DNA of 64,000 nucleotides from Mobula birostris (taxonomy: Eukaryota): positions 97,177,604 through 97,241,603 of the forward strand of contig NC_092383.1 in assembly GCF_030028105.1 (NCBI RefSeq), in the 5' to 3' direction. Every line of letters starts with the position of its first letter. The first letter of the stretch is position 1. Of this stretch, positions 12,910 to 60,282 are shown piece by piece. Made by a program: the position numbers and the translations under genes. The notes beneath the pieces are model-generated. The model searched no databases. It was not told the origin of the DNA and saw nothing but the letters and a program-made list of their open reading frames with translations.

Positions 12910-13019
12910 AATTACCAGGATGGGGGATAGCTCTGTTCGTCATCGTGGCTCTGGTCAGTGTGATGGTCGTGGTCAACATCGTTGTCCTCTGGAGGAGAAC
13001 AGCGGGACTGACACCGTAA
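12910..13019 (+). CDS. Transmembrane exon with in-exon stop, probable exon of gene 1
   Basis: Long pyrimidine tract then ccag|AA, phase 1; ELPGWGIALFVIVALVSVMVVVNIVVLWRRTAGLTP*; donor gtgagt at 13031. Link to the V exon is inferred from phase and order. Confidence 0.72.
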
Positions 13020-32419: not shown

Positions 32420-34210
32420 TCCAGATTTAGAGAGGTGTGGTATTTACAGAGAAACTGGGAAGACCACCACAGACCCACCTACCCACCTACATCCAGCATA
32501 CCTCACAGTCCCCACCATTCCAACAACTTCAGATTCCCTGCCCTCCGCTGCCTCACCTTCACCCCGGACTGACATCCCCCATCAGGGAGGCGTAAGGCCT
32601 TTCCATTTCTTTCCAAAACACAGATCCAGACAGTTCTCCTCGACTAACACCCTCCTCCACCAGGCACGAGTGCTCACGGTCAACAACGTCGTTGCCTGGA
32701 GATTAAATGTGCAGCCACGGCACTGGAATTGGCCCCAGCTATGGCTGCCTTTTCTCTGGCTATATGAAATGAACTTTCTTCCAAACCTACCCAGACATCT
32801 CTCCCCAACTCTTCCTCATTGATAACTGCACAGGTGACAATTCCTGCACCGATCTGGAACACAATTTCATTAAGATCCCAACTAACTTCCACCCCCACCC
32901 TTCAAATTCTATTTCTGACACCTTTCTCCCCTTTCTTGATCACTGCGTCTGTCTCTGGAGACATTTACTTCAAACTTACTGACTTCCACAGCTACCCAGA
33001 CCACACCTCCTCCCAGCATGTCCCTTGTTTGGACTCCATTGCTCTTGCAGTTTGTGGATTTCTACTGTACTTGAGATGAGGCTTTCCACTACAGGATGTT
33101 TGTGATCCTCGTTCTTGAAGAACTGTCCCCCGCCCACCACCCACCAACACTCTGTCAGAGGGCACCCACATCTCCTCCCTTGTACATCTCAACTCACCTT
33201 CTCTCAGCCAAGACAGAACAGGGAGGGAGTTCTTACATCCAACCAGCCCAGGTATGCAGCACATCACCTACCAGTCCTGTCAACTGCAACGTGATCCCTA
33301 CACTACCCCACCTCCCCAATTCCCTGACCCCTTGCTGATTTCCATATCATCACTCTCTCCATGATTCCCCACCTCACTCATCTCTCCCCCTCCCCAGACA
33401 CGATGCTGTGTGACTGTAGGAGGTGTAATACTTGTCCCTACACCTCCTCCCTCCCTCATCACCTTCCAGATGAGGCAGACATTCACAAGCCCCTCCTCTG
33501 ACCTTGTCTGAAGCATTCAGTGCTCTTGTTGTGCGCTGCTCTGCATTGTCGAGTCTCAGCACTTGCAGTCCACCCACCAGTGCTATCTGGAGCTCACAGA
33601 TTTGAGCAATTTTAATTCCTGTCTCCGTTCTCATAATGACATAGATGTCCTTCGCCTCTTCATCTGCCAGGATGAGGCCAAACACAACTAGAGAAGCATC
33701 GCCTTGTATTCTGCCTGGGTAGTTTACAACCCGATGGAGAATTCAATCATGTACATGCCAATCTCAGATAGACTGCCCCCACTCTGTTCCTTTTCTTTTT
33801 CCCACCTAATCTTCCCAGTTCCTCCTATACCCAGCATACACTCGCTGCCACCTATCAATCCATGTATTTCCCTCTTCCTCTTTCTCCATATTCTCCATCT
33901 GCCCCACTTCTCCCACCAGGTCCCCACCCACTCTCTTCTCATCTGCTCACTCCACCTGTCACCTCCCAGCCGTCCTCACTATTTCACTTCTCCTCTCCTT
34001 GTTCTGCCTATCATCCAATAATCTGGATCCACATGTCATCTCCTCCTCCCACTTTCTCTTTATATTGACCACTCTCCCTCTATCAGTCCAGTGAAGGGTC
34101 TCATCGCGAAATGTTGGCAGTCCATTTCCCTCCACAAATTCTGGCCAACCGTTGAGTTTCTCCAGCAGATTGTTGCTTCAGATTCCATCATCTGCAGATT
34201 CCCGTCTCCC
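32420..34210 (+). mobile_element. Degenerate Penelope-like element (RT and GIY-YIG remnants, terminal repeat)
   Basis: IPHQGG...FSSTNTLL...TVNN RT remnant; FQMRQTFT and LVFCLGSLQPDG-like GIY-YIG end; typical GATTCC...ATCTGCAG terminus. Confidence 0.7.
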
Positions 34211-35063
34211 CACAGAACAATCAGTGTTGCTTGGCAGCTGCCGGGATATTGTGCCATCTTTTGGGAAAGGTCTTGCAGTCCTATTGTTTCAAGGAATGGT
34301 TCCATAGTTTCCCGAAATAAATGGGCAGGCACAGGCCCCCTCCGGTCCTAATCCTGCATCATTCTCTCCCTACTGGTTTCACTTTACAGTCTCTTTATCT
34401 CACCACCCTCAAATCCCACTCCTTTATTTTCCCTTCCTCTCTTTCCTCCAATCTCCAAATCCACCCGTCTTCCCAACTGCCCCAATCTGTCTCCCACCTG
34501 CACCAGCTCCCTTGTCGTCCTCTCACTGTGTCTCACCTGCTCTGCTCCAGGTCCGTGTATCTCACCACCTCAGATCCCCTGTGCTTCCCCGATGAACCCA
34601 CTCCTTTCTCTGCCTCCTGCCTTCCCTCACTCTGCCCACCCTCCCTGCGACCCCTCCCAGTATATTCTTCCCTCCCTCCCCCTCCCCCCCAGATTTTCAT
34701 GCTCTCCTTCTCTTGCCCCTTCGATCACTCCGAGTATCCTCACACCTCTCCGCATCCACACTCCATACCTTTCCCTCCTCTCCACTCTCCTGCCTCCTCT
34801 CCTTCCCTCTGACCTTTGACATCCCCTCCTCCACTGTCCACCCCCAACTGTCCCTCTGCCTTCCTCCCTCCGTATTCCATACCTCATCCCCTCTGCCTTC
34901 CATTCAACTGACCCACCCATCTGTGTGTGGTGGTGGGGGGTCCGAACAGGAGACAGGAGAGGCAGGTAGGGAGAGGGAGGGAAGGGGAAGAGAGGAATGA
35001 GGAGGGAAGAGTGGAGAGGAAGAGGATGATGGGGATGGGGAGAAGGGAAGAGGTGACGGGGAG

Positions 35064-35113
35064 TCATTCGGCCTTGTGGAGTCTGCCTTCTGCTCCGGTG
35101 CCTGGGCGGGAGC
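35064..35113 (-). CDS. Cassette A cytoplasmic exon (SSRPGTGAEGRLHKAE*)
   Basis: Acceptor ctctgtcccccacag, phase 1, open to TGA; conserved in copy B. Confidence 0.75.
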
Positions 35114-35704
35114 CTGTGGGGGACAGAGGAGAGATGTCAGTTCACCCTGTGAGGGGTCTGAGGTTTCAATTACTTTCTCATCACACTAGGACCTCTTCAC
35201 TGCTGAGGGCAATGTCATGTGGTCTCTCTTGTCTGATCTGGAAGAAAACTCTCTCCCTCTCCCAGTCTCAATGTCTCAAGTCTCAAGTCTCCATATCCCC
35301 CCTTGTGGTTTGTATCTTGTATTGTCCTGGACTTTACATCTCCCCCTTCCCTATTTTTATATCTTCCTCTTTAGAACTGCATATCCGCATGTTCCCAATC
35401 TCCACATTCCACCATCCCTCTGTCCTTATCCCAAACCCCTGGTCCCTGTTATACTCGTTCAGATTAAACGAGGAGTGAACGATGAAGAGTGCAGAGTCTG
35501 GGACAAGAGCGATTCAGAGAACTGAGGTGGAAGAGATTGAGAGATCTGGGACAGTGGAGGTGGATGGGATTCAGAGTCACAGGGGGGTGGGATTGACAGA
35601 CTGAAACGGGGATTTTAAACACCGGTCTGAATCCACCCCTCACTGTTGACACTACCCTTCAGAACAACAGATTTTCACTGGAAACACACAAAAACAGTTC
35701 TCAC

Positions 35705-35803
35705 TGATAACGTGTACGGCGACTGTGACTGAGAGCAGAATCAGGAGCAGGACGGCAATGATTGTGGCCCTCAGCCGACATCCACAGAGACAGCTTCTCT
35801 CCG
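35705..35803 (-). CDS. Cassette A stalk/TM exon (AERSCLCGCRLRATIIAVLLLILLSVTVAVHVI)
   Basis: NAGNAG acceptor, donor A|gtgaga, 99 bp, phase 1-1, 20-residue hydrophobic run; conserved in copy B. Confidence 0.85.
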
Positions 35804-36029
35804 CTGCTGAAAGAGAGAGGATCACGGATTATATAGACGGTACCAGGCCTTCTCCAGCCCCACCTTCCCAACACTGACTAACATCACAAACCCATGGACA
35901 TCACTGTCCCATCACACACATTCAGGGCAGGGATTAAATACAAAGTAAAACTCTCTAAGTCCAATCATACCCTGCTGGGCTACAAGTCAGGTACTGGATT
36001 ATGCTAGTTTCTCATTACACACTATCCTG

Positions 36030-36905
36030 GTCAGGGAAACACCACCTTCTCCTACTCAATGTCAGCAAGACTGTGGAGCTGATTGTTGCCTTCAGTAGGA
36101 GGAAAGCAAAGGTTCAATTGCCAGTCCACATCGGAGGATCAGAGGAGGCAATGAACATCAACTTTAAAGTCCTTTGTGTTATGATTTCAGAGGTCGGTCC
36201 TGGGAGTAGCACGTAGGTGCGTTTACAATGAAAGCATGGCAGCACCTTGACTTTCACAGGAGTTCGTGAAGATTCAGCATGACATTGAAAACTTTAACAA
36301 ACTTTTATGATGTGTAATGGGGAGTATGTTGACTGGCTGAATCACAGCCTGGTATGGAAATGCTAATGCCGTTGAGGGAAAAATCTTGGTGCATATGATT
36401 CAGTCCATCAATGGTAAAGTCTTCCCCACCATTGAGCACATCTACACAGGGCACCGATGCTGGAAAGCAGCACCATTATCAGGGATCGCCACATCCACTG
36501 TCACGCAAACTTCTTGCTGCTGCCATCAGGAAGAAGATACAGAGCCTGAGGACTCACACCACCAGGTTCAGGAACAGTTACCATCCCTCAACCACCAAGG
36601 CTCTTGAAACAAAGGGGATAACTTCACTAAACTTCACTAGCCTCATCACTGAACTGTTCCCACAACCTTTGGACTCACTGTCAAGGACTCATCTCATGTT
36701 CTCGATATTTATTGCTTATTTATTGTTGTTATTATTGCTTCTTTCATTTTGTATTTGCAATTTGTTCTCTTTCACTCACCAGTCGAACACCCAGTTGGTG
36801 CAGTCTCTCACTGATTCTATGATGGATTTATTTAGAAAGCTGCAAGACAATGAATCTCAGGGTTGTATATTGTGACATATTTGTACTTCCATAATAAATT
36901 TACTT
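36030..36905 (+). mobile_element. Rex1-type 3' fragment in the C2-TM intron of cassette A
   Basis: LLLNVSKTVELIVAF...; HTTRFRNSYHP; AATAAA plus ACTTT-type tail. Confidence 0.75.
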
Positions 36906-36943
36906 TCAACATTATAATTCCAATTCCTGCCCCAGACACTCGC

Positions 36944-37231
36944 CAGACTTGTCCAGTTTACAGAAATCCCCCAGCCGGATCTGAGCTGTGTCCACACTGA
37001 CAGGGTTCCTGGCCTCACATCTGTACACAACAGTTTCTCTCTCTGCGGTGTGATGAACCTTCAGTGTCTCTCCGTGTTCCCAGAGGTGATGGGTTCTGTC
37101 GTTCACCACAGCTTCTCGTCCCCTCCACCATCTGAAGCTGGTGTGGTCACCAGAGGTCACAGAGCAGGTCAGGGTAAGCTCACAGGTCCCAGTGATGTTC
37201 TGAACTGTGATGTGTGTTCCTGACACCGGCT
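36944..37231 (-). CDS. Cassette A CD2/SLAM-type Ig C2 exon, with GC splice donor
   Basis: EPVS...TCELTLTCSV...W...YRCEARNPVS...DFC: four Cys and the NPVS motif typical of the SLAM/CD2 second domain; 288 bp, phase 1-1; donor G|gcgagt. Confidence 0.9.
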
Positions 37232-38354
37232 CTGGGTCTGGATGAAGAAATGAAAGATGAGTAAAGGAGATCTTTAAGGACACTGTATCCACCCCCCCCC
37301 CACTGTCTCTGACAGTCCCAAGTGTGGTTTAAGCCAATCTCAAATCATTTCCACCCACCTGTTTAACCCTTCCCTCAGCATTCAGTTCAGTCAGTTGCTG
37401 CTGGAGGAAGTTCCCACATGTTCTGTGCCCTCTTTCCCGACCACGCCCCGCACATTTCCATAAGAAATCCCCAGTATCCTATTTATGGTTCTGTAGCCCA
37501 GCAATTCTCTCCAGTTCACAACTGTTGTCACTGTTGTAACTGGCCCCAATGTCCCTTTGACACCTGAGTGTGTCCCACCCGGACCAGCCGGAATCTGGTC
37601 CAAGAGCAGCAGCCCTGGGACTGTGATCGACACAGACCCAGACTGGGACTGTCTGGTGAAACTGGCACTGTTCAGATCCTGGGTACACAGCCTCTCCACC
37701 ACAGAGCCACTCATTAACACACAGATCGGGGTGGAACCAGTAAGTTAATTCCAGTCTGGTGATGGGACACATTCTGGAAACAAAGTGTCAGAATGGGGAG
37801 TCAGTCACAGAGACAGTGCTGGGATCTGGGGCGAAAGATTCACCCTCGCTGTAAGCAGAGACAGATTAATATGGTGATGAACAGCAAACCAATCAAAAGA
37901 TTCTCAGACTGAACAAAGAAACAAAGGACCAGGCATTAAAATCGGACTGCAAATATAAGGCACAGCTGATAACAATGAACTAAGATAAGCGAATAAAGTG
38001 GGCAGGAAGGAGTTGGCCTTCTCATCTCTGCCTCCCTCTGGTGGCCAGTCCGAGGTTGACAGTTGGTTTCTGCAGAGCCATCGACTGCCCACCAACTGGA
38101 ACCTTGAATGGGCAACTTGGGAAGGACACAAGCAAACGGACCAGGAGATCCCCTGAACCGCCCACCACCACTCGCACTTTGGGTGTCTGAAGTTCAGGAG
38201 TGTGAGGCTGAAGTGGAGTCAAAACTGGAGGAGCCCACAGACTCATCCCAGTCACAGAAAGGGAAAACAGCGTGGGTGCCCGGAAACTGGTTTAGGAATC
38301 TATTGCACTGTACAGCTCTGTACAATACTCTCCACCCCAGGACCCCAGTGTAAA

Positions 38355-38815
38355 GGGGCAGTTGTAGCGAGGGTGAGGCCTCAAGCCTCGAGCTTGCCTG
38401 GTGTTGCAGACCAGGTGAGAGATAAAGAATCATTACAGCATGGTGTCTGTGGTTGGCTGGGACCTGACCTCTCCCATCGTTACTCCCCGTCAGTGTTCGA
38501 GTGGTGGAACGACAGGCTGGATGGCATGCGTCTGCACACTGCCGGGAGACCGTACCATCGATTGCTGGACATTGTCTCTGAAGGTCTTGGACAATACTGG
38601 TATATATATTTTATTATTCTAGTCAATACGCTTCTTTGCAAGCTGTTTTAAGTTATGTTCCTTGCTATTTTGAATGTTCGTCGCTACTTTGAACTTTGCT
38701 TTGTATTTTGAATGTTTTGTCCCACGGCTCCAGAGGAACCACCCCTTCAGCTGTATCTGTGTATGGTTTGAATGATAATTAATCTTGATTTGATTTGATT
38801 TTGAATTTGATTTGG
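38355..38815 (+). mobile_element. Retroposon-like insertion with (ATTTG)n tail, only in copy A
   Basis: Absent at the homologous point in copy B (after GTGTAAAGGGGCAG); ends in GATTT repeats. Confidence 0.55.
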
Positions 38816-41800
38816 AGCTAGCATGCTCCCCAGTGACGTCCTCCCGTTCTAGGTACAGGAACAGCTGGTGCTGGAAAGGAAAACCACGGTGAAGGAAGTT
38901 CTCCCGAAGTCTGAGCAGGATTTGGGGGGGGAAACCAAACCCCCAGAAGAGACAGCTGGGGGAGGAGGAACTCACCAGCAACAAGGGTCGGAGGTTAGAA
39001 ATGAAGACCCTCTCTGCAAAAGCCTCCAGTGGGACCGCCAGCAGCAGGTTCCCCCACCCCCACCACCATAATTCATCAGTTCAGGGTCAGGGACACAACC
39101 CTCTCAGCCATCAGGGAGAACACAGCTTCCCAGACACCACAGAGGCTGAAGGGCCAACACCTCCAGCCATTGCTTTCACAAAGACCCCAATTGTCATATT
39201 TGGTTATCCAGGGCTTTTTTGTCCATTTTCTCAAACCAACGTCCTGAAAGGTGACATGGCCACAGGAATAACCGGAACTGTAGAACCGTGGCTGGATCTG
39301 ACACCGTCAGTCATTTGGCTCACTACGTCTTCCATTCCCCACTCTAGCCTCTTCTGTCTTCTCCTCAGCCACCTGTCAGCTCCCCCTGCTGTCCCTCCTT
39401 CTTCCCTTTCTCCCATGGTCTGTTTCTTCTCCTGCCAGATTCATTCTTCTCCAGTTCTTTACCTTCCCCACACACCTGGGTTCACCTGTCTCCTCTAGCT
39501 AGTCCTCCATCCCTGACCACCACCCCCATCTTTTTGTCTGTGGTATTCTCCCTTCAATTCCAATTCTGAAGAAGGGTCTTCCTCTCCATAGATGCTGCCT
39601 GAGCTGCAGAGTTCCTTCAGCATTTTGTGTGCGTTGCTCTGGATTTCCAGCATCTGCAGAATCTCATGGATGAGTATCAATATGATGTTGTTTTTAGCAC
39701 CGACACCACCAATTACAGCAGAATCACAGACAACATGGCAATATACTGTAGAACCAATCACAGGGAGATGGGAAAATGAGAGTGAAGACAGGAACACAAG
39801 GGACATGTCGGTGATCTCTCTACACTGACCCTGCAGCTTGGGAGAGACTTCTTCACCCAGGTCAGTTGGAGCCTCATGAATATTCAAGAAGTTGACAGAA
39901 TATACACTCTGCCTGTTTCCCGATTCTGGATTTTGGATTTCTCTGGATGTTTTGATCTCTGCCTGAACTTTGACACCAACTTTGATTGCACCTCGGGATT
40001 TGTTACTCAATTAATATCACTGTGTGCACAGTACTGTGCCTGTGATTGGATCCCTGCTCCAGCGTCCTGACACAATGGCCTTTGAGTGTTATGGACCGTC
40101 AAAGTCATTTGTTGCATCTAAATATGGGAATTAAAATAAATCCATTTATCTTTTTAAAATTTAAGCTGAACCGCATGCATTGTATGGAAATATCAATTTT
40201 GCATGGACAGAAGATGTACCACAATCTTGTTGTCCAGAGCAATGACAATAAGGTCCTGTTTTATTCTGTTATATTCTTAGTTTCCTCTGAGTTTGTTGAA
40301 AACTCCACTCTGGATCAGATCATCCTGGGAGCATCGTGCACACTTCCAGTCTGCAACACTTCACATTTATCAGGATTAAATTCCACCTAGCATTGCTCTG
40401 CCTGATTTACCAGCTGTTCAACGTTTTCCCGTATACTCAGGATCTAAAACTCCACCAAGTTTCATGCCACTGTGCAGTTACCTCTCACACCTCGTTTGCA
40501 GATCAGCACTGTGACAGTCAAAGTACTGATCCCTATAGCACACCCTGGCTCACAGGCTTCAACCCACCAACATAATTCTCCATCTCCCTCAGCCTTTGAT
40601 TTCCAAGTGTGTGGTTGTGTCTGTGTACTGTGTCACTCACTGGGACACTATATTCAGTGTAATGAATACACAGGGTCTCACTCAGCACAGACCAGCATGA
40701 AGGCTGAGGAATAAACACGTTGCTGAGCTCAGACCTCAGTCTGAGCAATTACCAAGCAGCGCTTTGAGAAACCTATGGGATATCTGGAGTCCATGTACAT
40801 GACAGACCAGACCTTTGACCGGGGGATACAGTGGGATCTGTTGAACTGTGACCCACAGATACAGAACACTGATAAGGATGAAGAATGTCACCCCCTCTGA
40901 GAGACAGCACTCTACTTTCCCCCTCTCCTTCCATCTCCCCTCCCTACCTCTCTCCCTCCCCTCCCTCTTCCCTCCACACTCCCTGTCTTGCCCTTCTCCC
41001 ATAGCCCTCTCCCATTCCCCCTCTCCTGATCACCCTCACCCTCTCCCCCATCTGCCCTACCACCCTCCCCCTCCTCCTCTCCCCCACCCCTTATCCCCCA
41101 CCCACTCTCACCCAAACCCTCTTCTCCACCTTCCCCTTCCCTCCCTCTGCCCTCTCCCTCCTGGGCTGGACGTGTCTACCAGCCAACCTGGGCAAGTGAA
41201 CGGGGTAAAGAGGGAGCTCTCCAGTCAGAGCAATTAAAGTCGGTCACTGTCCCTTCAGGTTAACAGCCTCACCCTCCTAATCTTCCAGCCATTGGTTCCT
41301 CCATGCACTCCCTCAAATCACTCCCTCAAACCTCACAAAGCTGAAATTCTCTGCCATACTCTGCTGCTCACTCAGAAGCTCTATCTCCTTGCAATTAAAT
41401 CCTCCTGTCTTCAGTTTTGTCCTTCAGGACGGCAACAGGTCCCAAGCAAGCCCACGATTCATAAACGGTGAGGTAGTGGAAAGGGTGTCTAGTTTCAAGT
41501 TTTTGGGGATGAATATCATTGAGAAGTTTTCTTGGTCCATCAACACAGCCTCGATAGTAGGGAAGGCACAATGGCACCTACACTAATGGAGGTGTTAAAG
41601 GAGAGCTGATCTGCCTCAAGAATTGCCGGCCATCTTTTATCAGTGTGTAATGGAGACCATACTGACATACAAAATGACAGTGTGGTACTCTAGCTGCAGC
41701 AAGACAGATCACAAATCACTGGTGATTGGGAATGCTCAGCACGTCATTGGGACTCAACTACCAGACCTGGAGACAACCTACAACTCTCGATGCCTACAGC

Positions 41801-45410: not shown

Positions 45411-48299
45411 AACTTGTAAATACTGAATGTGTGCACCTTGTGTATTATTTGTGTAAATAACTTTTATAGTTTTGAAAAAGAAAGACAGACTTTTTTGTGT
45501 CCGTTGTTGTACTAGTTCTGTGAAATGACTCAAAAGATTGTAATTCTTCCTCATTAACCCTATCAGAATTGTCTTGTGGCCCAGGACTAAAATCCTCCTC
45601 TTCCAACTCACATCTTCTCTCCACTGGACCGTCTTTAGAATGAGAATTTCCCTCCTATTTCTACTACATTGGTAGAATTTGTTCACTCCCATATCAGTCG
45701 GCAGCGCATACGGGGAAGTTGGTGGAGATAATTCAGGAGGGAGAGGCTGCCATCACACCCAAGTTGGGTGAGTCTATTCAATGCTCGGAAAAACTCACTT
45801 CACGTTTCTCATCAGCCTACCGTCCTCCCCTCCGTGCAATATAGAGCTCAGCAATTATCAACAGCCTCCCCTATCTCGCGTCCCAAACAGAATAAACACA
45901 GTGCCACTGTACAACTGCCACACTGGGCTGAGATTGCTACTGGGGTTGCTCGGACACTGTCCAACACTGAGAGCGCTACCATTGCACGTTGTGTGACGTT
46001 CAGAGAACAATGGTTTTATTTTATTAAATCACGATCTCTCGCAGAGCTCTCATGGAACCCCAGTAGAGAAATTCTCTATTATACACCTGTGCCCATCTCT
46101 CTCTGATTTAGGGAGGTTAAAAGTACATTTATTATCAAAGTATGAATACATTATACAACTTTGAGTTTCGTCTCCTTACAGGGAGCCAAAAAAAACCCCA
46201 GAAAATCAAACATCCAATGTGCAGAAAAAATTATGCAAACAATAAATGCAAGCAAATAGCATCCAACTCACCCTCAAATTCTCCCAGATCATCCCCAGCT
46301 TCTCTCTACTGTCTTGATTTCTCTGAATCCATCGCAAGAAACTTTACCACAAACCCACCAACTTCCTGTTACCTACACCAGACCCTTTTCCATCATGTTC
46401 TTTGTAAGGACTCCATTTCTTTCTCACAGTTTCTGTGTCTCACGTTGGGATGAGATCTTCCAGGCCAGAATATCGAAAATATCCTCCGTTTTTCAGCACT
46501 GTGGTAGATGAAGTCTTCAACCTCATATCCTCGATTTAACAAACCTCTGGTCTCAACATACTTCCCCCCAGACACTTTGCTCTGTGACTAAAGGAGGTGT
46601 AACATGTCCCTACACCTCCTCCCTCCCTCATCACCTTCCAGATGAGGCAGACATTCACATGCCCCTCCTCCAACCTTGTCGGCTGCAGCCGGCACTCTAA
46701 TTCTGACCTCCTCCACCCTGATGAGACCAATCACCGACTACGTACCAACACTCAGTCCACTGATGCCAACTGAAGCACCTGGTTCTGAGTCATTTTAGTC
46801 CTTATCTCCATTCCCTCTCTGACCTGATTGACTTTAGCTTCCTCCTCTGCCAGGATGAGACCAAACACAACCGGAGAAACAACACCTTGTATTCTGCCTG
46901 GGTAGTCTAAAACCCAATGCCATATACATGGTTGAATTCTCCAATCTCAGATAAACTGTTCCCCCTCTGTTCCTTTTCTTTCTCCTAATCTGCCCCGTTC
47001 CTCCTACACCCAGCATACCTCCCTATCAGTCCATTTCCTTCCCCTTCCTCCATCTGCCAATCACCTACACACTCCCATCACTGGGTCCCCACCCACTCTC
47101 TTCCCATCTGTTCTCTCCACCTCCCTTATTTGGTTCCATGTTTCATTTCTAATCAGATTCTATCATCTGCAGCCCTTCATCTCTTCCAAGCCTTTGTCAC
47201 TATTTGCACCCTCCTCTGCTTCATCTGTCTATCAACCCCTCCCCATTTAGATCCACCTATCACCTCCCAGCCTTCCTCACTATTTCACTCCTCCTCTCCT
47301 CCTCCTGCCTATCATCCAATAATTTGGATCCACAAGTCACCTCCTCCTCCCCCTCTCTCTTTATATTGAACATTCTCCCTCTATCCGTCCGGAGAAGGGT
47401 CGTGACTCGAAACGTTGACAGTCTGTTTCCCTCCACGGATGCTGCCTGACCCGTCGAGTTCCTCCAGCAGATTGTCTGTTGCTTCAGATTCCAGCATCTG
47501 CAGTTTCCTGTCTCCCCACAGAATGATCGAGGTTGCTCGGCAGCTGCTGGGATGTTGTGCCATGCTTTGGCCCAGCTCCCCCCTGGTCCTAATCCTGCAT
47601 TGTTCTCCCCTACTAGTTTCATTTTACAGTCCCTTTATCTCACCATCCTCAAATCCCACTCCCTTATTTTCCCTTCCTCTCTTTCCTCCAATCTCCAAAT
47701 CCACCCGTCTTCCCAACTGCCCCAATCTGTCTCCCACCTGCACCAGCTCCCTTGTCGTCCTCTCACTGTGTCTCACCTGCTCTGCTCCAGGTCCGTGTAT
47801 CTCACCACCTCAGATCCCCTGTGCTTCCCCGACAAACCCAGTCCTTTCTCTGCCTCCTGCTTTCCCTCACTCTGCCCACCCTTCCTGCTACCCCTCCCAG
47901 TATATTCTTCCCTCCCTCCCCCTCCCTCCCGGACCTTCATGCTCTCCTTCTCTTGCCCCTTCGATCACTCCGAGTATCCTCACACCTCTCCCCATCCACA
48001 CTCCGTACCTTTCCCTCCTCTCCACTCTCCTGCCTCCTCTCCTTCCCTCTGACCTTTGAAATCCCTTCCTCCACTGCCCACCCCCAACTGTCCCTCTGCC
48101 TTCCTCCCTCCATATTCCGTACCTCATCCCCTCTGCCTTCCATTCAACCGACCCACCCATCTGTGTGTAGTGGTGGGGGGTCAGAACAGGAGACAGGAGA
48201 GGCAGGGAGAGGGAAGGAAGGGGAAGAGAGGAATGAGTAGGGAGGAGTGGAGAGGAAGAGGATGATGGGGATGGGGAGAAGGGAAGAGGTGACGGGGAG

Positions 48300-48349
48300 T
48301 CATTCGGCCTTGTGGAGTCTGCCTTCTGCTCCGGTGCCTGGATGGGAGC
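48300..48349 (-). CDS. Gene B cytoplasmic exon (SSHPGTGAEGRLHKAE*)
   Basis: Acceptor ctctgtccccccacag, phase 1, stop at 48300-48302. Confidence 0.75.
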
Positions 48350-48937
48350 CTGTGGGGGGACAGAGGAGAGAGGTCAGTTCACCCTGTGAGGGGTCTGAGG
48401 TTTCAATTCCTTTCTCATCACACTAGGACCCCTTCACTGCTGAGGGCAATGTCATGTGGTCTCTCTTGTCTGATCTGGAAGAAAACTCTCCCTCTCCCAG
48501 TCTCAATGAAAAGTCTCAAGTCTCCATATCCCCCCTTGTGGTTTGTATCTCATATTGTCCCGGATTTTACATCTCCCCCTTCCCTATTTTTATATCTTCC
48601 TCTTTAGAACTGCATATCTGCATGTTCCCAATCTCCACATTCCACCATCCCTCTGTCTTTATCCCAAACCCCTGGTCCCTGTTATACTCGTTCAGATTAA
48701 ATGAGGAGTGAAGGATGAAGAGTGCAGAGTCTGGGACAAGAGCGATTCAGAGAACTGAGGTGGGAGAGATTGAGAGATCTGGGACAGTGGAGGTGGATGG
48801 GATTCAGAGTCACAGGGGGGTGGGACTGAGAGACCGAAACGGGGATTTTAAACACCAGTTTGAATCCACCCCTCACTGTTGACACTACCCTTCAGAACAA
48901 CAGATTTTCACTGGAAACACACAAAAACAGTTCTCAC

Positions 48938-49036
48938 TGATGACGTGTACGGCGACTGTGACTGAGAGGAGAATCAGGAGCAGGACAGCAATGATTGTGG
49001 CCCTCAGCCGACATCCACAGAGACAGCTTCTCTCCA
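48938..49036 (-). CDS. Gene B stalk/TM exon (VERSCLCGCRLRATIIAVLLLILLSVTVAVHVI)
   Basis: Acceptor ttttgccag, donor gtgaga, 99 bp, phase 1-1. Confidence 0.85.
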
Positions 49037-49649
49037 CTGGCAAAAGAGAGAGGATCACGAATTATAGAGACGGTACCAGGCCTTCTCCAGCCCCACCCTC
49101 CCAACACTGACTAACATCACATACTCACGGACATCACTGTCCCATCACACATATCCAGGGCAGCGATTACAGACGAAGTAAAACTCTCTAAATCCAATCA
49201 TACCCTGCCGAGCTAGAAGTTAGATACTTTATTATGCTAGTGTCTCATTACACACTATCCTGGTCAGGGAAACACTACCTTCTCCTACTCAATGTCAGCA
49301 AGACTGTGGAGCTGATTGTTGGGATAACTTCACTAAACTTCACTAGCCTCATCACTGAACTGTTCCCGCAACCTATGGACTCACTGTCAAGGACTTATCT
49401 CATGTTCTCGATATTTATTGCTTATTTATTGTTATTATTATTGCTTCTTTCATTTTGTGTTTGCAGTTTGTTCTCTTTCACACACCAGTCGAACACCCAG
49501 TTGGTGCTGTCTCTCACTGATTCTTTGATGGATTTATTTAGAAAGCTGCAAGACAATGAATCTCAGGGTTGTATATTGTGACATATTTGTACTTCCATAA
49601 TAAATTTACTTTTAACATTATAGTTCCAATTCCTGCCTCAGACACTCAC

Positions 49650-49937
49650 CAGACTTGTCCAGTTTACAGAAATCCCCCAGCCGGATCTGAGCTGTGTCCA
49701 CACTGATGGTGTTCCTGGCCTCACATCTGTACACAACAGCTTCGCTCTCTGCAGTGCGATGAACCTTCAGTGTCTCTCCGTGTCCCCAGAGGTGATGGGT
49801 TCTGTCGTTCACCACAGCTTCTCGTCCCCTCCACCATCTGAAGCTGGTGTGGTCACCAGAGGTCACAGAGCAGGTCAGGGTAAGCTCACAGGTCCCAGTG
49901 ATGTTCTGAACTGTGATGTGTGTTTCTGACACCGGCT
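49650..49937 (-). CDS. Gene B CD2/SLAM-type Ig C2 exon
   Basis: Four-Cys C2 domain, 288 bp, canonical G|gtgagt donor; NPVS changed to NTIS. Confidence 0.92.
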
Positions 49938-52900
49938 CTGGGTCTGGATGAAGAGATAAAAGATGAGCAAAGGAGATCTTCATGAACACTCGATCCGCCC
50001 CCCACTGTCTCTGACAGTCCTAAATATGGTTTAAGCCAATCTCAAATCATTTCCACCCACCTGTTTAACCCTTCCCTCAGCATTCAGTTCAGTCAGTTGC
50101 TGCTGGAGGAAGTTCCCACGTGTTCTGTGCCCTCTTTCCCGACCACGCCCCGCACATTTCCATAAGAAATCCCCAGTATCCTATTTATGGTTCTGTAGCC
50201 CAGCAATTCTCTCCAGTTCACAACTGTTGTCACTGTTGTAACTGGCCCCAATGTCCCTTTGACACCTGAGTGTGTCCCACCCGGACCAGCCGGAATCTGG
50301 TCCAAGAGCAGCAGCCCTGGGACTGTGATCGACACAGACCCAGACTGGGACTGTCTGGTGAAACTGGCACTGTTCAGATCCTGGGTACACAGCCTCTTCA
50401 CCACAGAGCCACTCATTAACACACAGATCGGGGTGGAACCAGTAAGTTAATTCCAGTCTGGTGATGGGACACATTCTGGAAACAAAGTGTCAGAATGGGG
50501 AGTCAGTCACTGAGACAGTGCTGGGATCTGGGGCGAAAGATTCACCCTCGCTGTAAGCAGAGACAGATTAATATGGTGATGAACAGCAAACCAATCAAAA
50601 GATTCTCAGACTGAACAAAGAAACAAAGGACCAGCATTAAAATCGGACTGCAAATATAATCACAGGTGATAACAATGAACTAAGATAAGCGAATAGGGTG
50701 GGCAGGAAGGAGTTGACCTTCTCATCTCTGCCTCCCTCTGGTGGCCGGTCCGAGGTTGACAGTTGGTTTCTGCAGAGCCATCGACTGCCCACTACCTGGA
50801 ACCTTGAATGGGCAACTTGGGAAGGACGCAAGCAAACGGACCAGGAGATCCCCTGAACAACCCACCACCACTCGCACTTTGGGTGTCTGAAGTTCCGGAG
50901 TGTGAGGCTGAAGCGGAGCCAAAACTGGATGAGACCCACGGACTGATACACAGAGTCATCCCAACCACAGAAAGGGAGAACAACGTGGGTGCCCGTAAAC
51001 TGTCTTAGGAATCCGTTGCCCGGTACTGCTCTTTGCAATACTCTCCACCCCAGGACCCCAGTGTAAAGGGGCAGGACCCACACACAGAGAGAACTCCACT
51101 GGGCACTATCCTCGCTACTGAATCACAATTAGTTTCATTATTTTTCTTTCTTTTCAAATCTCCCGGGGTATTGGGAAAGGGGCCCCCGGGGTACTGGGAA
51201 AGGGGCTGGTTTGGGTCCGGAGGAACCGACCTGGCTGCAGACTGTGTTGCTACCTTCTACTCAGGAAGCTTCAAAGTTGGTGCAGTATAATCGTGCGAGA
51301 TTGTCTCGGACATTTCACTTGTGATTCATCAGTTCAGGGTCAGGGACATAACCTCCTCAGCCATCAGGGAGAGCACAGTTTCCCAGATACCATAGAGGCT
51401 GGAGGGCCAACACCTCCAGCCACTGCTTTCACAAAGACCCCAATTGTCATATTTGGCTATGCAGGGCTTTTCTGTCCGTTTTTTCAAACCAACATCCTGA
51501 AAGGTGACATGGCCACAGGATTAACCGGTACTGTAGAACAGTGGTTGGATCTGACACTGTCAGTCATTTGGCTCACTATGTCTTTCATTGCCCACTCTAG
51601 CCTCTTCTGTCTTTTCCTCAGCCACCTGTCAGCTCCCCCTGCTGTCCCTCCTTCTTCCCTTTCTCCCATGGTCTGTTTCCTCTCCTGTCAGATTCATTCT
51701 TCTCCAGTTCTTTACCTTCCCCGCACACCTGGGTTCACCTGTCTCCTCTAGCTAGCCCTCCATCCCTGACCACCACCCCCATCTTTTTATCTGTGGTATT
51801 CTCCCTTCAATTCCAATTCTGAAGAAGGGTCTTCCTCTCCATAGATGCTGCCTGAGCTGCAGAGTTCCTTCAGCATTTTGTGTGCGTTGCTCTGGATTTC
51901 CAGCATCTGCAGAATCTCATGGATGAGTATCAATATGATGTTGTTTTTATCACTGACACCACCAATTACTGCAGAATCCCAGACAACATGGCAATTACAC
52001 GGTAGAACCAATCACAGAGATGGGAAAATGAGACTGAAGACAGGAACACAAGGGACATGTCGGTGATCTCTCTACACTGACCCTGCAGCTTGGGAGAGGC
52101 TCCTTCACCCAGGTCAGTTGGAGCCTCTTGAATGTTCAAGAAGTTGACAGACATGTCTGCACCAGTAAAACTGGGCAAGTGACCGGGGTAAGGAGGGAGC
52201 TCTCCAGTTGGACCAATTATGTCGCTTTCAGTCACAGATCCCTTCAGTCTGTCATCCTCACACCCAGTATCTTCCACTGTCCACTCAGGAAAGTGTCTCC
52301 TTGCAAATAAATCTTCCTTTCTTTCAGTTTTGTCCTTCAGGGAGGCAAGAGGAACCAAAATGGTGAAGTAGTGGAAAGGATCTCCAGTTTCAAGGTTTTG
52401 TGGATGAACATCACCGAGGAGCTCCCTTGGTCCATCAACATAACCTCGACAGTAGAGAAGGCACAACAGTGACTACACTATCCAAGGTGCTTAAGGAGAG
52501 CTAATCTGCCCCAAAGATTCAATTCATTTCAAGCTTAATTGTCATTCGACCTGACATGAATCCAGCCAAACGAAACAGCATTACTCCAGGGTCAAGGTGG
52601 AAAACACAGTACAACAGTCACACAGTAAAACAGTAAACCCCACGGCTTGAGACCCTGAGTGCATTGAATGCCATCAGAATCTGCAGTCAACAACAACAGA
52701 GCTTGTCTTCTGCCAAGTGAAGGTCAGGGAGGGCAGCACCGACTCTGTCCTGGACGCCGCACCACACCGCCCCCTATGGACCACACCGGCTTTGACGCCT
52801 CTCTCCTGGCGGCTGCAAACAGGTGACACCGTGGCTTGAGGCCTGGATCTCGCTACGAGCAAGGTCATGTGGTTCTGCCGACATTCACTCCTGCTCCCCT

Positions 52901-53449
52901 CCGACACATCAGCGAATCGAACATGTGACAAACCATATTAACAACGTTCAGAAGGGTTTTGTAATAACAAGACGGCTACTCGCAATTAGACTATAGGCCT
53001 CCATCAGCTCAGGCAGCAGCATTTCTCCACCAGCGAGCAACTTCATTTTCTCCGCCAGTGAGCAACTCGCTGATGGTGTAGACCTGCAGTACTTTGAAGT
53101 TCTTAACGGAAAGCGGGATGTTATGATCATTAGAAATTTATTTAAATAAGAGAGTGGCACATTGTTAACCCTGTAGACTCTGCTGCATCAAGACAGCTCA
53201 CAAAGCACAGGTGATTGGAAAGGCTCAGCACATCGCTGGGACTCAACGACTGGATCTGGAGACAATCTACAACACTCAGTACCTGTGTTGCCCTCATAAC
53301 ATCATTAAAGACCCGTCCCACCCCAGACACTGTTCAATCTCCTGCCATCTCGCCAGAGATACAGAAACTTCCCAGCCAAGACAGTAAAAGTGAAAAGCAG
53401 CTTCTTCCCAAGGGTTATTGTGCAGCTGAATAATACTACATCCAGACTT

Positions 53450-53935
53450 GCCAATGTATCAGTACCTCCAGTTGAAGTCTGTCTTTTTGTGTGTTTCACC
53501 CCAGCTGTCAGTCTGTGGTTTTGTATTACCATGTGCTCCTGTCTCCGCTCCTGCTCTACTCCGGCCCCGGTATTACTGAGTACTCCGTCTCTCACCTGTT
53601 TCTCATTATTACCTGTATTGCTGCCACGTGTCTCATTGTGCTCCACCTATCATCTGCCTCTCTGTTTATTGCTCAGTGTATCTCAGTCCTGTGATTTCAT
53701 CAGATTGCACCAGTGAATTTTCCTGAGTCTTTCCAGCATTTGTATCTGTACCCTGTCTGTCTGAGTATCAACTCTGCCAGTTTCCCGATTCTGGTTTTTG
53801 ATTTCTCTGGATGTTTGGATCTCTGCCTGAACTTTGACACCAACCTTGTTTGGACCTTGGGATTTGTTACTCAATTAATATCACTGTGTGCACGGTACTG
53901 GGTCTGCGATTGGATCCCTGCTCCAGTGTGATAAA
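53450..53935 (+). mobile_element. Gypsy-like LTR fragment; only its 3' 170 bp survive in copy A (39900-40071)
   Basis: Pyrimidine-rich CACCTG-containing LTR-like sequence; copy A counterpart ends TGACA. Confidence 0.45.
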
Positions 53936-54963
53936 TACACAGGGTCTCACTCAGCACAGCACAGCATGAAGGCTGAGGAATAAACACCTTGCTGAGCTCA
54001 GACCTCAGTCTGGGCAATTACCAAGCAGCGCTTTGAGAAACCTATGGAATATCTGGAGTCCATGTACATGACAGACCAGGCCTTTGACTGGGGGTTACAG
54101 TGGGATCTGTTGAACTGTGACCCACAGATACAGAACACTGATAAGGATGAAGTCCTGAGGCTTCATTAGACATTGGTCAGACCGCACTTGGAGTATTGTG
54201 AGCGGTTCTGGGTCCCTTATCGAAGAAAGGATATGCTGGCACTGGAGGGGGTCCAGAGGAGGTTCTCAGGATTTGTTTAAGGAATGAAAGGATTAACACA
54301 TGAGGAAAATTGAATGGCTCTGGGGCTGTACTCACTGCAATTTAGCAGTATGAGTCAGGGGGAATCTTATTGAAAGCTTTCAAATATTAAAAAAGCCTTG
54401 TTAGAGTGGATGTGGAGAAGATGTTTCCTGTAATGAGAGAGTCTGGGACCAGGGGCCACAGCCTTCGAATAGAGGCACATTCATTTAGAACAGAGGTGAG
54501 GGAATTCCTGTAGCCAGAGTGTTGTGAATGTGTGGAATTCATTGTCACAGAATGCTATGGAGGCCACCATTTGGTATATTTGAAGTGAAGGTTCATGGGT
54601 TCTATATTAGTCAGGGCATGAAAGGTTACAGAGAAGGCAGGAAAATGGGGCGAAGAGAAGTAATAAATCAGCTATGATTGAATGGTGGGGCAGAATCGAT
54701 GGGCCGAATGGCCTAATTCTGATCCTTTATCTTATGGTCTATACCGCTGAGCCCAACCACTCCAGCCCCCTCCTACCCCATCAACCTACCCCCCTCATTC
54801 CCTACACCCTGTGTGCTCAGCTCCTCCAGTCTCAGAGCCACATGGACTTTGCTGGTGAATCCTTCACAGCCTCTGGTTCAGTCTCCGGGGATGTGGTGAA
54901 TGTGTCCCCCAGACTCAGCCACAATACACTGGGACTGTGAGCCCAGATCTGGCCACAGACAGT

Positions 54964-57939
54964 TAGAATCAGAATCAGGTTTATTATCACCGGCATGTGA
55001 TGTGAAATTTGTTAACTTAGTGGCAGTGAGAAAAGGACATGCCCTGGGTGCTGGAGGTCTTTAATAATAGACGCTGCCTTTCTAAGACACTGCTCCCTAA
55101 AGATGTCCTGGGTACTTTGTAGGCTAGTGCCCAGGATGGAGCTGACTAGATTTACAACATTCTGCAGCTTCTTTCAGTCCTGTGCAGTGGCCTCTCCATT
55201 CCGGACAGTGATGCAGCCTGTCAGATTGCTCTCCACAATACAACTATAGAAGTTTTTGAGTGTATTTATTGACATGCCAAAACTCTTCAAACTCCTGATA
55301 AAAGTATAACTGCTGTCTTGCCTTCTTTATGACTGCATCAATATGTTGGGACCAGGTTAGATCCTCAGAGATGTTGACACCCAGGAACTTGAAGCTGCTC
55401 ACTCTCTCCACTTCTGATCCCTCTGTGAGGATTGGTATGTGTTCCTTCATCTTACCCTTCCTGAAGTCTACAATCAGCTCTTTCATCTTACTGACATTGA
55501 GTACCAGGTTGTTGCTGTGGCACCACTCCACTAGTTGGCATATCTCACTCCTGTACGCCCTCTCGTCACCACCTGAGATTCTACCAACAATGCTTGTATC
55601 ATCAGCAAATTTATAGCTGGTATTTGAGCTATGCCTAGCCACACAGTTTTTATATATATATGAGAGAGAGAGAGAGTTAGAGAGAGAGAGTTAGAGAGAG
55701 AGAGTTAGAGAGAGAGAGTTAGAGAGAGAGAGTTAGAGAGAGAGAGTTAGAGAGAGAGAGTTAGAGAGAGAGAGTTAGAGAGAGAGTGAGAGAGAGAGAG
55801 TGAGAGAGAGAGTGAGAGAGAGATTAGAGCAGTGGGCTAAGCACACACACCTGAGGTGCGCCAGTGTTGATTGTCAGCAAGGAGGAGATGTTATCACCAA
55901 TCCGCACAGACTGTGGTCTTCCAGTTTGGAAGTTTAGGATCCATTTGCAGAGAGAGGTTCAGAGGCCCAGGTTCTGCAGCTTTGCAATCCGGATTGCAGG
56001 AATGTTGGTATTAAATGCTTGGTTAGAGTCGATGAACAGCATCCTGATGTAGGTGTTTGTGTTCTCTAGGTGGTCTAAAGTCGTGTGGAGAGCCAATGAG
56101 ATTGCGTCTGCTTTTGACCTATTGTGGCGCTAGGCAAATGGCAACGGGTCCAGGTCCTTGCTGAGGCAGGAGTTCAGTCGAGTCATGACCAATCTCTCAA
56201 AGCATTTCATCACTATTAATGTAAGTGCAGCCTGGCGATAGTCACTAAGGCAGCTCACATTATTCTTCTTTGACACTGGTATAATTATTCCCTTTTTGTA
56301 GCAAGAGGGAACTTCTGCCTGTAGCAGTGAGAGGTTCAAAATATCCTTGAATACTCCCGCTATTTGGTTGGCACAGGTTTTCAGAGCCTTACCAGGTACT
56401 CCATCGGGACCTTCTGCCTTGTGAGGGTTCACTCTCTTTTGAGACAGTCTAACATCGGTTTCTGAAACAGAGATCACAGGGTCATCAGGTGCAGCAGGGA
56501 TCTCCACAGCTGTAGTTGTGTTCTCCCTTTCAAAACGTGCATGGAAGGCGTTGAGTTCATCTGGTAGTGAAGCATCGCTGCCATTGGGTTTCGCTTTGTA
56601 GGAAGTAATGTCTTGCAGTCCCTGCCAGAGTTGCCGTGCATCTGATGTCACCTCCAACCTCGTTCGAAATTGTCTCTTCACCCTTGAAATAACCCTCCAC
56701 AAATCATACCTGGTTTTCTGGTACAGGCCTGGGTCGCCAGACTTGAATGCACAGATCTAGTCTTCAGCAGACACTGTACCTCCTGGTTCATCTGTGGCTT
56801 TTGGCTTGGGAATGTACAGTAAGACTTTGTGAGCACACACTCGTCCACACAGGTTGAAATGAGGTCGGTAACAAATGCAGCATATTCAACCAGATTCAAA
56901 AATGAATCCCTGAATACAGTCCAGTCCACCGATTCAAAGCAGTCCTGTAGGCGCTCCTGTGCTTCCCTTGTCCAAACCTTCTTGGTCCTCACTACTGGTG
57001 CTGCAGTCTTCAGTCTCCGCCTGTACTCAGGGAGTAGAAGTACAGCTACGTGATCAGATTCCCGAAGTGAGGACGTGGATTAGCACGGTAGGCATTCTTG
57101 ATGGTGGTGTAACAATGGTCCAGTGTGTTGTTTCCTCTGGTGTTGCAAGTGACCTGTTGATGGGAATTGCTTTGTGATTTTTTTTCAGACTGGCCTGGTT
57201 AAAATCTCCCAAAACGATGGTGAAGGTGTTAGGGTGCGCTGTTTCGTGCATGTTGATCCCATTGCTCAGATCATCTAAAGCCTGATTGACACTGGCCTGA
57301 GGTTTAATGTAAACTGTTACCAGAATGACCCCAGAGAACTCCCGTGGTGGGTAAAAATGATGACACTTTACTGCTAGATATTCCAGGTCTGGAGAGCAGA
57401 ATTGGGACGGCACTGATATATTTGTGCACCAAGAAGAACTGATCATGAGGCAAACTCCTCCACCTCTGCTTTTGAGAGACTCTATAGACCAATCCTGGCG
57501 GTGAAGAGTAAACCCGTCCATCTGAATCACTGCATCCGGTAGGGAAGGGGTTAACCAGGATTCCGTGAAACAAAGGACACACGCGGTCCTAATGTCCCTC
57601 TGATCCAACACCCTGGCTCTGAGATCATCGCAGCTATTCACCAGAGACTGCACGTTCGCCAGCAAGGCCGTCAGTCTGGGGAGTTTAAAACCCCGTTTCA
57701 TTAAACTCACTTGTAATCCTGATCTTCACTCACGCTTCCTCCGAGGTTTTCTCCGTGGGCACTTCCGACCACAGACTGTTTTTTCCCGTCGGTTTTAAGC
57801 AGCAATAGTTCATTTAAACGCATTAAGACAGCTTTGTTGACTGTACTGACCTTGGAAGCAGTTGTGCTGGCTGAAACGGGAATATTTAATCGTATCCATT
57901 GGGAGTTCTGCTGCTACTTGAGTCGCCCCTAGTATGTTG
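54964..57939 (-). mobile_element. Near full-length Rex1/Babar LINE in the V-C2 intron of gene B
   Basis: APE endonuclease ORF (LANVQSL, CFTESWL, GGGVCLMI, LGDFN), RT pieces (KAEGPDGVPG, KFADDT), (GATTCT)n tail at 54964; host intron continues on both sides. Confidence 0.95.
55645..55826. repeat. (GAGAGAGAGTTA)n microsatellite inside Rex1 RT
   Basis: About ten 12-bp units plus (GA)nGT variants. Confidence 0.95.
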
Positions 57940-58047
57940 CAGTGGGGTTCAGTAAAAAGGGGGACACACAGGATCTGCCCTCACCCATTAATTAGGAATG
58001 TTTCAGGAACTGGTGAAACCCGGGCCCCTCCGCGGTGTCTCACTCAC

Positions 58048-58371
58048 CGTACACCTCCAGTCGCACTGTTGTTATACTTTCAGCTCCTGAAACTGCTGCT
58101 GCAAACATCACCTCGTAATCACCGGAGTCCTCTCTCCGTAGATCATGGATTTCCAGACTGAAATTCCCACGATGAAAGGTTCTCCGTCGCTTGTACTCGT
58201 CAGGACCGAAGTAGCTAACGTTACCCTTCGAGTACTTCACTATCATGTTTCTGGGTGATACCCATCTCCACACAACATCAGCAACGTCCAGTCCGACTGG
58301 GATCCCAGAAGGTAAGGAGACCGAGTGTCCCCGAGTTCCGTTCACGGTGGTCGGGGAAGCCCCAGTCCCAG
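58048..58371 (-). CDS. Gene B CD2/SLAM-family Ig V-set exon, no cysteines
   Basis: Acceptor ttgtctcctcag, donor G|gtgagt, 324 bp, phase 1-1; FSLEIHDLRREDSGDYEV...TVRLEVY; N-glycosylation sequons NGT, NVS, NFS. Confidence 0.93.
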
Positions 58372-58694
58372 CTGAGGAGACAAGAGGAGAGAGTCAGCAG
58401 ATCAGCTCAGTGACTGGTGGAGGAATCAGAGCTGTGAGAATCATAGATATAGCAACAGGCCGTACGGCCCATCGTCTGTCTCCCAGCCCCGTGAGAGAGC
58501 TGGCCCACAGATCCTACATCACACAGTGAGCCCATGGAGGGTGGGGGAACAGAGTGAAGACTCTGCACCCCACCCTGAGGAAGAAAGATACAGCCTGTAG
58601 CCAGGTTGGGGGAGGGGGCTGGGACATGAACATGTCAAATGGGACCCAATCCAGAAAATAGGGTGGGCAGAGATTGTTTGGGAATGGGTGAAAA

Positions 58695-58905
58695 ACTGTG
58701 AGTGAACTCGGGATAAATGAAACAACAGTGCGACTGGAGGTGTACGGTGAGTGAGACACCACAGAGGGGCCCGGCTTTCACCCATTCCTGAAACACCCCT
58801 AACTACTGGGTGAGGGTAGATCCTGTGTGTTTCCCTGTTTACTGAACCCCAGTGACTGCCCATGTCCAGAGCTGGGCTCACGGTCCCAGTGTAGTGAGGC
58901 TGAGG
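58695..58905 (+). pseudogene. Remnant of a third V exon (TVSELGINETTVRLEVY), its donor and the start of the intron
   Basis: Exon end at 58746, GTGAGT donor, then about 160 bp homologous to the post-V introns of genes 1 and B; in-frame TGA at 58689 and no V body upstream. Confidence 0.85.
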
Positions 58906-60282
58906 GTGCGAGTGGGTGGAGGGATAGAAGGGGCTTTGAGTGTATGTATCCTAATCATAAAGGTTACAGGACAGGTGAATAAGGGGTTAAACAGACAGAT
59001 GGCTTTCTTTAACTGAGACACACGGAGTATGAGATTGCGACAGGACACTGGAACGGTGGCCAACCGCAGTTTGAACACAGTTCGACACTGAGATGAGTAT
59101 GTTCACCACATCCCAGGACAGACCGGGTCACTCTTGGAGAGGGTGAAGGGGGAATTTACCAAACTGTTGCAGGGCTTGGAACATTATTATTGAGAGGAAA
59201 GATCAGAGAGTCTGGGTTGCTTTTGCTTGGAACAGGGGATATCGAGCAGGAGACTATGGAGGGTGCAAAATAACAAGGGGCCTGAGCAGAGTAAATGGGA
59301 AGGAGGGATTTCCCTGAGCAGAGGGCTGGAGATTCACAGACACTGTGAATGATGAGTTGCAATGTCAAAGAGAGACAAAATCTTGATGAATACAGGACTG
59401 AAGGTGTTATATTTGAATGCACGCTGTATATGGAATAAGGTAGATGAACTTGCAGGATAGTTACAGATTGGCATTTATGATGTTGTGGACATCACTGAAT
59501 CAGGGCTGAAAGAAGATTATAGCTGGGAGCTGAACATCCCAGCACACATTGTGTCAAAAGGGCAGGTAGTCAGGCAGAGGGGGTGGGGTAGCTCTGTTGG
59601 TAAGAAATGAAATCAAGTCATTAGGAAGAGGTGGTATAGGATCAGAAAGTATAGAATCATTTCGGGTAGAGCAAAGAAACTGCAAGGGTAAAAAGATCCT
59701 AATGGAAGTTATATACAGACCTACAAACAGCAACAAAGATGTGAGCTACAGATTACCATGGAAAATGCACATCAAGAGGGCAATGTTACAACAATCATGG
59801 GGAATTTCAATGTGGACTTTTATCAGGAAAATCAGATTGGTGCTGGAACCCAAGAGGGGGAATTTGTAGAATACCTACAATATGGCTTTTTAGGGCAGCT
59901 TGTGGTTGAGTCCACTAGGGGTATTCTGGATTGGGCATTGTGCACTGAACCAGAATTGATAGCGAGCTTAAGGTAAAGATCTCCTTCAGGAGCAGTGATC
60001 ATAATATAATAGAATTCACCCTGCAGTTTCAGAGAGAGAAGCTAAAGTCAGATGTATCAGTATTACAGTGGAGTAACGGGAATTTCAGAGGCGTGAGGGA
60101 GGAGCTGGCCCAAACTGATTGGAAGGGTCTCTAGCAGGGATGACAACAGAGCAACACTGGCTGGAGTTTCTGAGAGGAAATTGGAAGTTCTGGATATATA
60201 CATCCCAACGAAGAAATCTTCCAAAGGCAGGATGAAGCAACTGTGGGTGAAAGGGAATTCGAAGCCAACATAAAAACCGAAG

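Follow-up and report, generated by a model that had tools for sequence, protein, structure and literature searches.

We analyzed a continuous stretch of 64,000 nt from the giant manta ray, Mobula birostris (assembly GCF_030028105.1, contig NC_092383.1, forward strand, positions 97,177,604 to 97,241,603), referred to below as the window and numbered from its first letter. Two members of a SLAM/CD48-like receptor gene family, here called gene A and gene B, lie in the window on opposite strands: the V exon of gene A occupies positions 11029-11348 of the plus strand, and that of gene B occupies positions 58048-58371 of the minus strand. The V exon of gene B is bracketed by an inverted repeat, one arm of which is formed by the end of that exon and the start of the following intron, and the other by a short segment on the opposite strand. 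The analysis combined comparisons within the window, searches against annotated proteins and a comparison with Logan contigs, which are short, unitig-like sequences assembled from both DNA and RNA data and carrying two organism labels.

Gene B corresponds to a pair of existing NCBI models from M. birostris, XP_072133951.1 and XP_072133952.1, which represent two isoforms. Its minus-strand V, C2, transmembrane and tail exons, joined at canonical AG/GT sites, give residues 20-273 of XP_072133951.1 exactly. The V exon is 324 nt long, runs from phase 1 to phase 1 in an open frame and encodes a V-set immunoglobulin domain (residues 20-126), the translation being 100% identical to both isoforms over these 107 residues. 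It is followed by a C2-type immunoglobulin exon at 49650-49943 (residues 127-224), a transmembrane exon at 48938-49036, which is skipped in isoform X2, and the last coding exon at 48300-48349, which includes the stop codon; the C2 and transmembrane exons are both flanked by AG and GT.

The V domain of gene B matches the Pfam family PF07686 (E = 4e-9), with weaker matches to 2B4 and SLAM, and relatives of the gene match the Pfam families Ig, I-set and Ig_3. No cysteine is present in the V-exon translation, and the canonical intradomain disulfide is thus absent. In the exons that match the annotated protein, a membrane-proximal C2-type domain precedes the transmembrane segment, and the cytoplasmic tail of 15 residues contains no tyrosine and hence no ITSM (TxYxxV/I). 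In this respect gene B resembles the short-tailed, CD48-like members of the family; one relative, P0008, carries ITSM-like motifs. Skipping of the transmembrane exon, as in isoform X2 (XP_072133952.1), keeps the reading frame, and the predicted product is a secreted V-C2 protein ending in the same 15 residues. Searches against protein representatives and with a word index placed gene B in a large ray family, whose members NCBI names SLAM family member or CD48 antigen-like, and which was found in Mobula birostris, M. hypostoma, Hypanus, Hemitrygon and Pristis. A literature search on SLAM-family expansion in cartilaginous fish returned no directly relevant work among its top matches.

Among the contigs, RNA-like runs contain only 0.27-0.33 of the sequence words of the gene B V exon, and the RNA contigs that align there differ from it by 3-8% and are probably derived from paralogues. 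At three positions of this exon (58163, 58170 and 58182), every matched contig of the first organism label (organism A), from DNA and RNA alike, differs from the letter in the window, while exact contigs do exist in the neighbouring stretches; filtering may have removed the reference-like unitig, or there may be a difference between individuals at these sites.

The 19-residue leader of gene B shares no 6-residue word with any of the six reading frames of the window, and a leader exon was not found there by tblastn with 24 family leaders, by a motif scan or by following a 30-nt RNA loose end. The recorded span of the gene is 20,260 nt and its last coding exon lies at 48.3 kb, which would place the leader about 2-4.5 kb beyond position 64000, a placement that depends on an automatic gene model built from this same assembly. 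With the leader beyond the window, the sequence from 58372 to the window end would be intron 1. Gene B is therefore a complete and already annotated gene, intact in the window from the V exon onwards and, according to the model, continuing to its leader outside it.

The inverted repeat was recovered by three routes. A repeat search reported inverted copies at 57940-58073 and 58721-58854, each 134 nt long, 90% complementary and separated by 647 nt; BLAST of the repeat region against the 64-kb window gave 89.6% identity over 134 nt (E = 6.5e-47); and a direct count of one arm against the other found 120 of 134 positions identical, with 14 differences and complete identity over the initial 40 positions. 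Arm 1 (57940-58073, minus strand) begins with the terminal 26 nt of the V exon of gene B (58073-58048), which close with the codons for TTVRLEVY and a single G, and continues through the GT donor (58047-58046) into a further 106 bases of the intron. These measurements agree with the initial annotation of the locus, which had described arms of 133 bp with about 89% identity, the first 39 bp being the same, and had recognized in them the end of the V exon together with its splice donor. Arm 2 (58721-58854, plus strand) is part of a longer segment, 58721-58922, in which the first 26 nt are the end of a V exon (58721-58746, translated as TTVRLEVY), the next two are a GT donor (58747-58748), and the remaining 175 nt or so belong to an intron.

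The origin of this plus-strand segment becomes clearer when gene A is included as a third copy of the same block (V exon plus conserved intron start, 11029-11524, plus strand). Positions 58723-58922 match gene A at 11325-11524 on the same strand, with 89% identity over 200 nt, gene A lying 47 kb away; this match runs 68 nt further than the match to gene B, which covers 134 nt and ends at a LINE. Across the 132-134 nt that all three copies share, the segment is 89.6% identical to gene B and 90.9% identical to gene A, and genes A and B are 91.7% identical to each other. This star-like pattern indicates that the segment is not specifically a copy of gene B's own end, contrary to the earlier description of the repeat as made from the 3' end of the gene B exon.

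The same segment is truncated at its 5' side. It keeps only nine V codons, an in-frame stop lies 11 codons upstream, and the plus strand upstream of 58721 has no similarity to the V body in DNA or protein, the tblastn match being confined to TTVRLEVYG. Being 89-91% identical to both genes over 134-200 nt, truncated at one end and without coding continuity, it has the make-up of a gene fragment, and we refer to it below as the relic. It sits 350 nt upstream of the gene B V exon, in inverted orientation. The 133-nt spacer at 58588-58720, which separates it from the intron-1 homology described below, and the sequence on its other side (58923-59383) have no other match in the window at a word size of 7; the inner edge of the repeat (58721) and the 3' edge of the relic (about 58922) thus both adjoin sequence unmatched elsewhere in the window. 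The locus had previously been read as a deletion scar between two head-to-head paralogues, in which both leader exons and most of the plus-strand V exon were removed. Homology bears out one part of that reading, namely a 5'-truncated V exon and intron remnant of a paralogue lying opposite to gene B. The loss of both leaders is contradicted by the complete model XP_072133951.1, whose recorded span puts the leader outside the window; and since the relic would then lie inside intron 1, a deletion that removed the leader is not needed.

The comparison of genes A and B also accounts for why the relic pairs so well with the end of the gene B V exon. The end of the V exon and the start of the intron are the best-conserved part of the family in this comparison, and the relic pairs with the V end of gene B because this block is about 90% conserved across family members, not because of any local design. 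The apparent bracketing of the V exon is accordingly a family-wide conserved block meeting a stray inverted copy of it. Along the two genes, identity is 69% in the V body, 78% in the upstream intron (gene B proximal intron 1, 58372-58587, against 10818-11028 upstream of the gene A V exon) and 90% over the last 26 nt of the V exon plus the first 108 nt of the intron. The low value in the V body may mean either that the V body is diversifying or that its flanks have been homogenised. Read-through of the donor leads to a stop after two codons in gene A and gene B alike (VYGE*). A conserved CACAGTG/CACTGTG heptamer precedes each V exon at corresponding positions of the upstream intron (58522-58528 and 10872-10878), with no nonamer, and is probably there by chance or as part of a conserved intron element. 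For contigs with at least 90% likeness, the depth summed over the arms reaches about 10 times the value of the unique flanks; this depth is not a copy number, and it does no more than fit the dozens of paralogues recovered by the protein search.

The outer edge of the repeat has a separate cause. Positions 57940 and 58854 mark the 5' end of a LINE in gene B and not the end of the homology of the relic. This element, a decayed non-LTR retrotransposon of 2,973 nt on the minus strand (54967-57939), lies inside intron 2 of gene B and carries an Exo_endo_phos (AP-endonuclease) remnant with an E-value of 1.8e-4, below Pfam's cut-off, a weak RVT_1 remnant (E = 0.015) with a YxDD-type motif, and a 3' tail with a (GATTCT)n-like microsatellite. 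Further copies of it occur within the window, and contig depth over it is very high. Read along the minus strand, the gene B intron tracks gene A as far as an ACTG, which is followed by the LINE, a second ACTG (a possible target duplication) and then, at 54966, gene A sequence again. The stretch of intron 2 past the element (54812-54966) is homologous both to gene A at 11454-11618 and to the relic at 58855-58904, the latter matching positions 54966-54914 with 84% identity. Since the relic also resembles the far side of the insertion, the LINE is younger than the divergence of the copies, and its arrival shortened the repeat that can now be seen; on these alignments, the repeat stops at 57940 because the element was later inserted into gene B intron 2.

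An inverted repeat of this kind may also be produced by the assembly itself, through a chimeric fold-back or the collapse of a paralogue near 58.7 kb, and no contig of organism A crosses the junction 58720/58721 with 31 nt on each side. However, 14 mismatches separate the arms over their 134 nt, where the arms of a fold-back would be near-identical, and contigs cover both sides of the relic junctions. Those of organism A match the window exactly at 58460-58716 (depth about 8) and at 58875-59412, at the depth of unique sequence, and those of the second organism, 4-8% different from the window, cover 58544-58744, reaching 24 nt into the relic, and 58878-59411, with 45 nt of relic plus its flank. 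The right junction is thus bridged by contigs of both organism labels (58875-59412 and 58878-59411), and the left junction by the second organism only, over 24 nt, which is under the 31-nt rule. The contigs of the second organism suggest that the relic occupies the same setting in a relative. The 10% divergence between the arms and the contigs of two organisms together suggest that the relic is old and not an assembly fold-back, and we consider an artefact highly improbable.

Taken together, these observations lead us to propose, with a probability of about 0.8, that the plus-strand arm is a functionless relic of gene-family turnover. Some 200 nt of a paralogous SLAM/CD48-like gene, now a dead fragment, would have come to lie backwards in intron 1 of gene B, either through the duplication, inversion and deletion that would accompany turnover of the large manta-ray cluster or as a templated repair patch. 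Under the first of these routes, the fragment would be the remnant of an inverted paralogue otherwise lost to deletions, and under the second, a short patch copied from a paralogue. The outer edge of the repeat was set by the later LINE insertion in intron 2. The repeat as a whole would have no programmed function at the DNA level.

Known birth-and-death clusters offer close parallels to such a history. Gene-fragment pseudogenes in the mammalian SLAM/CD2, KIR/LILR and CEACAM clusters likewise consist of a truncated, non-coding piece of a paralogue beside an intact member, and these clusters share with the locus the LINEs, segmental duplications and partial copies that surround the relic. The manta-ray relic differs from those fragments in being very short (about 200 nt) and inverted, and in having its counterpart in a live gene only 350 nt away, an arrangement that yields a hairpin-capable repeat that includes a splice donor. 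If the proposed reading is correct, the repeat is one of the ordinary scars that birth and death leave in the megabase-scale SLAM/CD2-like cluster of this species, and it carries little mechanistic weight. For annotation, the relic should be taken neither as a second gene nor as a sign that gene B has lost its leader.

The initial annotation had also raised, more speculatively, the possibility of an invertible switch, in which recombination between the arms would flip the V body in some cells or individuals and couple it to other exons. Some features of the locus fit this idea: the inverted arms bracket the V body, the relic retains an intact, in-frame GT donor, and the short contigs are compatible with either orientation, as they end at the arms, whose first 40 nt are identical, and are therefore blind to orientation. 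Nevertheless, a flipped V exon would find no partners, because no plus-strand C2, transmembrane or leader exon was found on either side of the repeat. In tblastn searches with 186 family proteins, only minus-strand exons were recovered (at 49.6-49.9, 48.9-49.0 and 48.3 kb, with duplicates at 35.0-37.3 kb), plus-strand immunoglobulin or transmembrane exons were not found in 58.9-64 kb, gene B has no called neighbour within 10 kb of either end, and the left flank is occupied by the LINE. No RSS-like combination of heptamer and nonamer was found either: the region 57.5-59.3 kb holds two CACAGTG-type heptamers, and the best nonamer at 12- or 23-nt spacing matches at 4 of 9 positions.

The arms themselves also speak against frequent exchange. 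Their perfect identity extends over only 40 nt, which is far too little for efficient homologous exchange in vertebrate cells, and they have drifted apart by 10%, whereas frequent exchange would homogenise them. Among the joints listed, none changes strand in 57.9-58.9 kb, and a comparison of gene A with the rest of the window shows no inverted partner in the neighbourhood of its V exon. Comparison with established inversion systems leads to the same point, as the sole likeness to the Hin and Fim invertases or to RAG-mediated inversional V(D)J joining is the presence of inverted repeats around a coding segment; unlike in those systems, the repeat has neither a recombinase signal nor an RSS, its arms have diverged, and there is no functional flipped state. 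A switch, if real, would silence or re-wire the receptor each time the V exon was flipped and would represent a RAG-independent DNA switch in a vertebrate immune gene. With no partner exons in 58.9-64 kb, no RSS-like signal and no called gene nearby, we find the proposal unsupported and give it next to no chance of being correct.

The repeat might instead act on RNA. According to this alternative, the two arms pair within the gene B pre-mRNA over about 134 bp, so that the V exon is looped out and its 5' splice site is hidden in the duplex, which could lower the use of the donor, promote skipping of the V exon (neutral to the frame, from phase 1 to phase 1) or back-splicing, or attract A-to-I editing, whether as an accidental or as an exapted regulator of the output of gene B. 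Long complementary intronic sequences around exons promote exon skipping and the formation of circular RNAs, and they are substrates for ADAR enzymes. The NCBI gene model puts both arms in one predicted primary transcript, given its 20,260-nt span and the absence of the leader from the window. In the predicted fold of the minus strand over 57930-58865 (936 nt), the arms pair from end to end with a minimum free energy of -486.5 kcal/mol, against -331.6 kcal/mol for shuffled sequences (z = -26), and the two-strand duplex reaches -247.8 kcal/mol with a perfect 40-bp stretch over the donor, a stability that is a trivial consequence of the repeat.

Several observations stand against a role of this kind. 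Among the contigs examined, no exact gene B RNA contig, no skipped junction and no back-splice was found, and the NCBI isoforms differ in the transmembrane exon and not in the V exon. The conserved block of gene A has no pairing partner, and nothing therefore suggests selection for pairing. In addition, helicases and co-transcriptional splicing often stop pairing over a distance such as 650 nt. Separately, local folding of the three copies of the conserved intron block gave z-scores of -0.2, -0.5 and +1.0, with no signal of a structured RNA, and an Rfam scan of 57-60 kb gave no match at E <= 1. Considering both sides, an effect on RNA appears unlikely, even if it is the least improbable of the alternatives to a functionless relic.

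The nearest known counterparts of such an effect are inverted pairs of Alu or other SINE elements, with which the locus shares two inverted arms in one predicted transcript, a single bracketed exon and a stable predicted duplex. The arms differ from those elements in not being copies of a transposon. Moreover, one arm is itself an exon end plus its donor, and pairing would consequently mask the donor rather than just bring splice sites together. Were this version true, V-less or circular transcripts of a SLAM/CD48-like gene would arise through masking of the V donor.

Beyond the repeat, the window contains a segmental duplication in which positions 33392-40065 and 46566-53929 match on the same strand with about 95% identity. 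The lower copy carries, on the minus strand, a C2 exon (37238-36939), a transmembrane exon (35807-35697) and a tail exon (35111-35067), whose protein is 89-93% identical to that of gene B, and no V exon lies upstream of this set within the window. The lower copy may be either a V-less partial gene copy or an alternative set of 3' exons; the presence of this second, V-less exon set suggests that partial duplicates are common in the region. Gene A has an apparent transmembrane exon at 12905-13016 (plus strand), which encodes a hydrophobic stretch followed by RRTAGLTP and a stop. The rest of the window, the surroundings of gene B included, contains no counterpart of it, and genes A and B thus use unrelated membrane anchors. 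Finally, the window holds two minisatellites: a 34-nt unit is repeated about 23 times at 18722-19501, and a 36-nt unit about 112 times at 20388-24377, each with about 91% matching.
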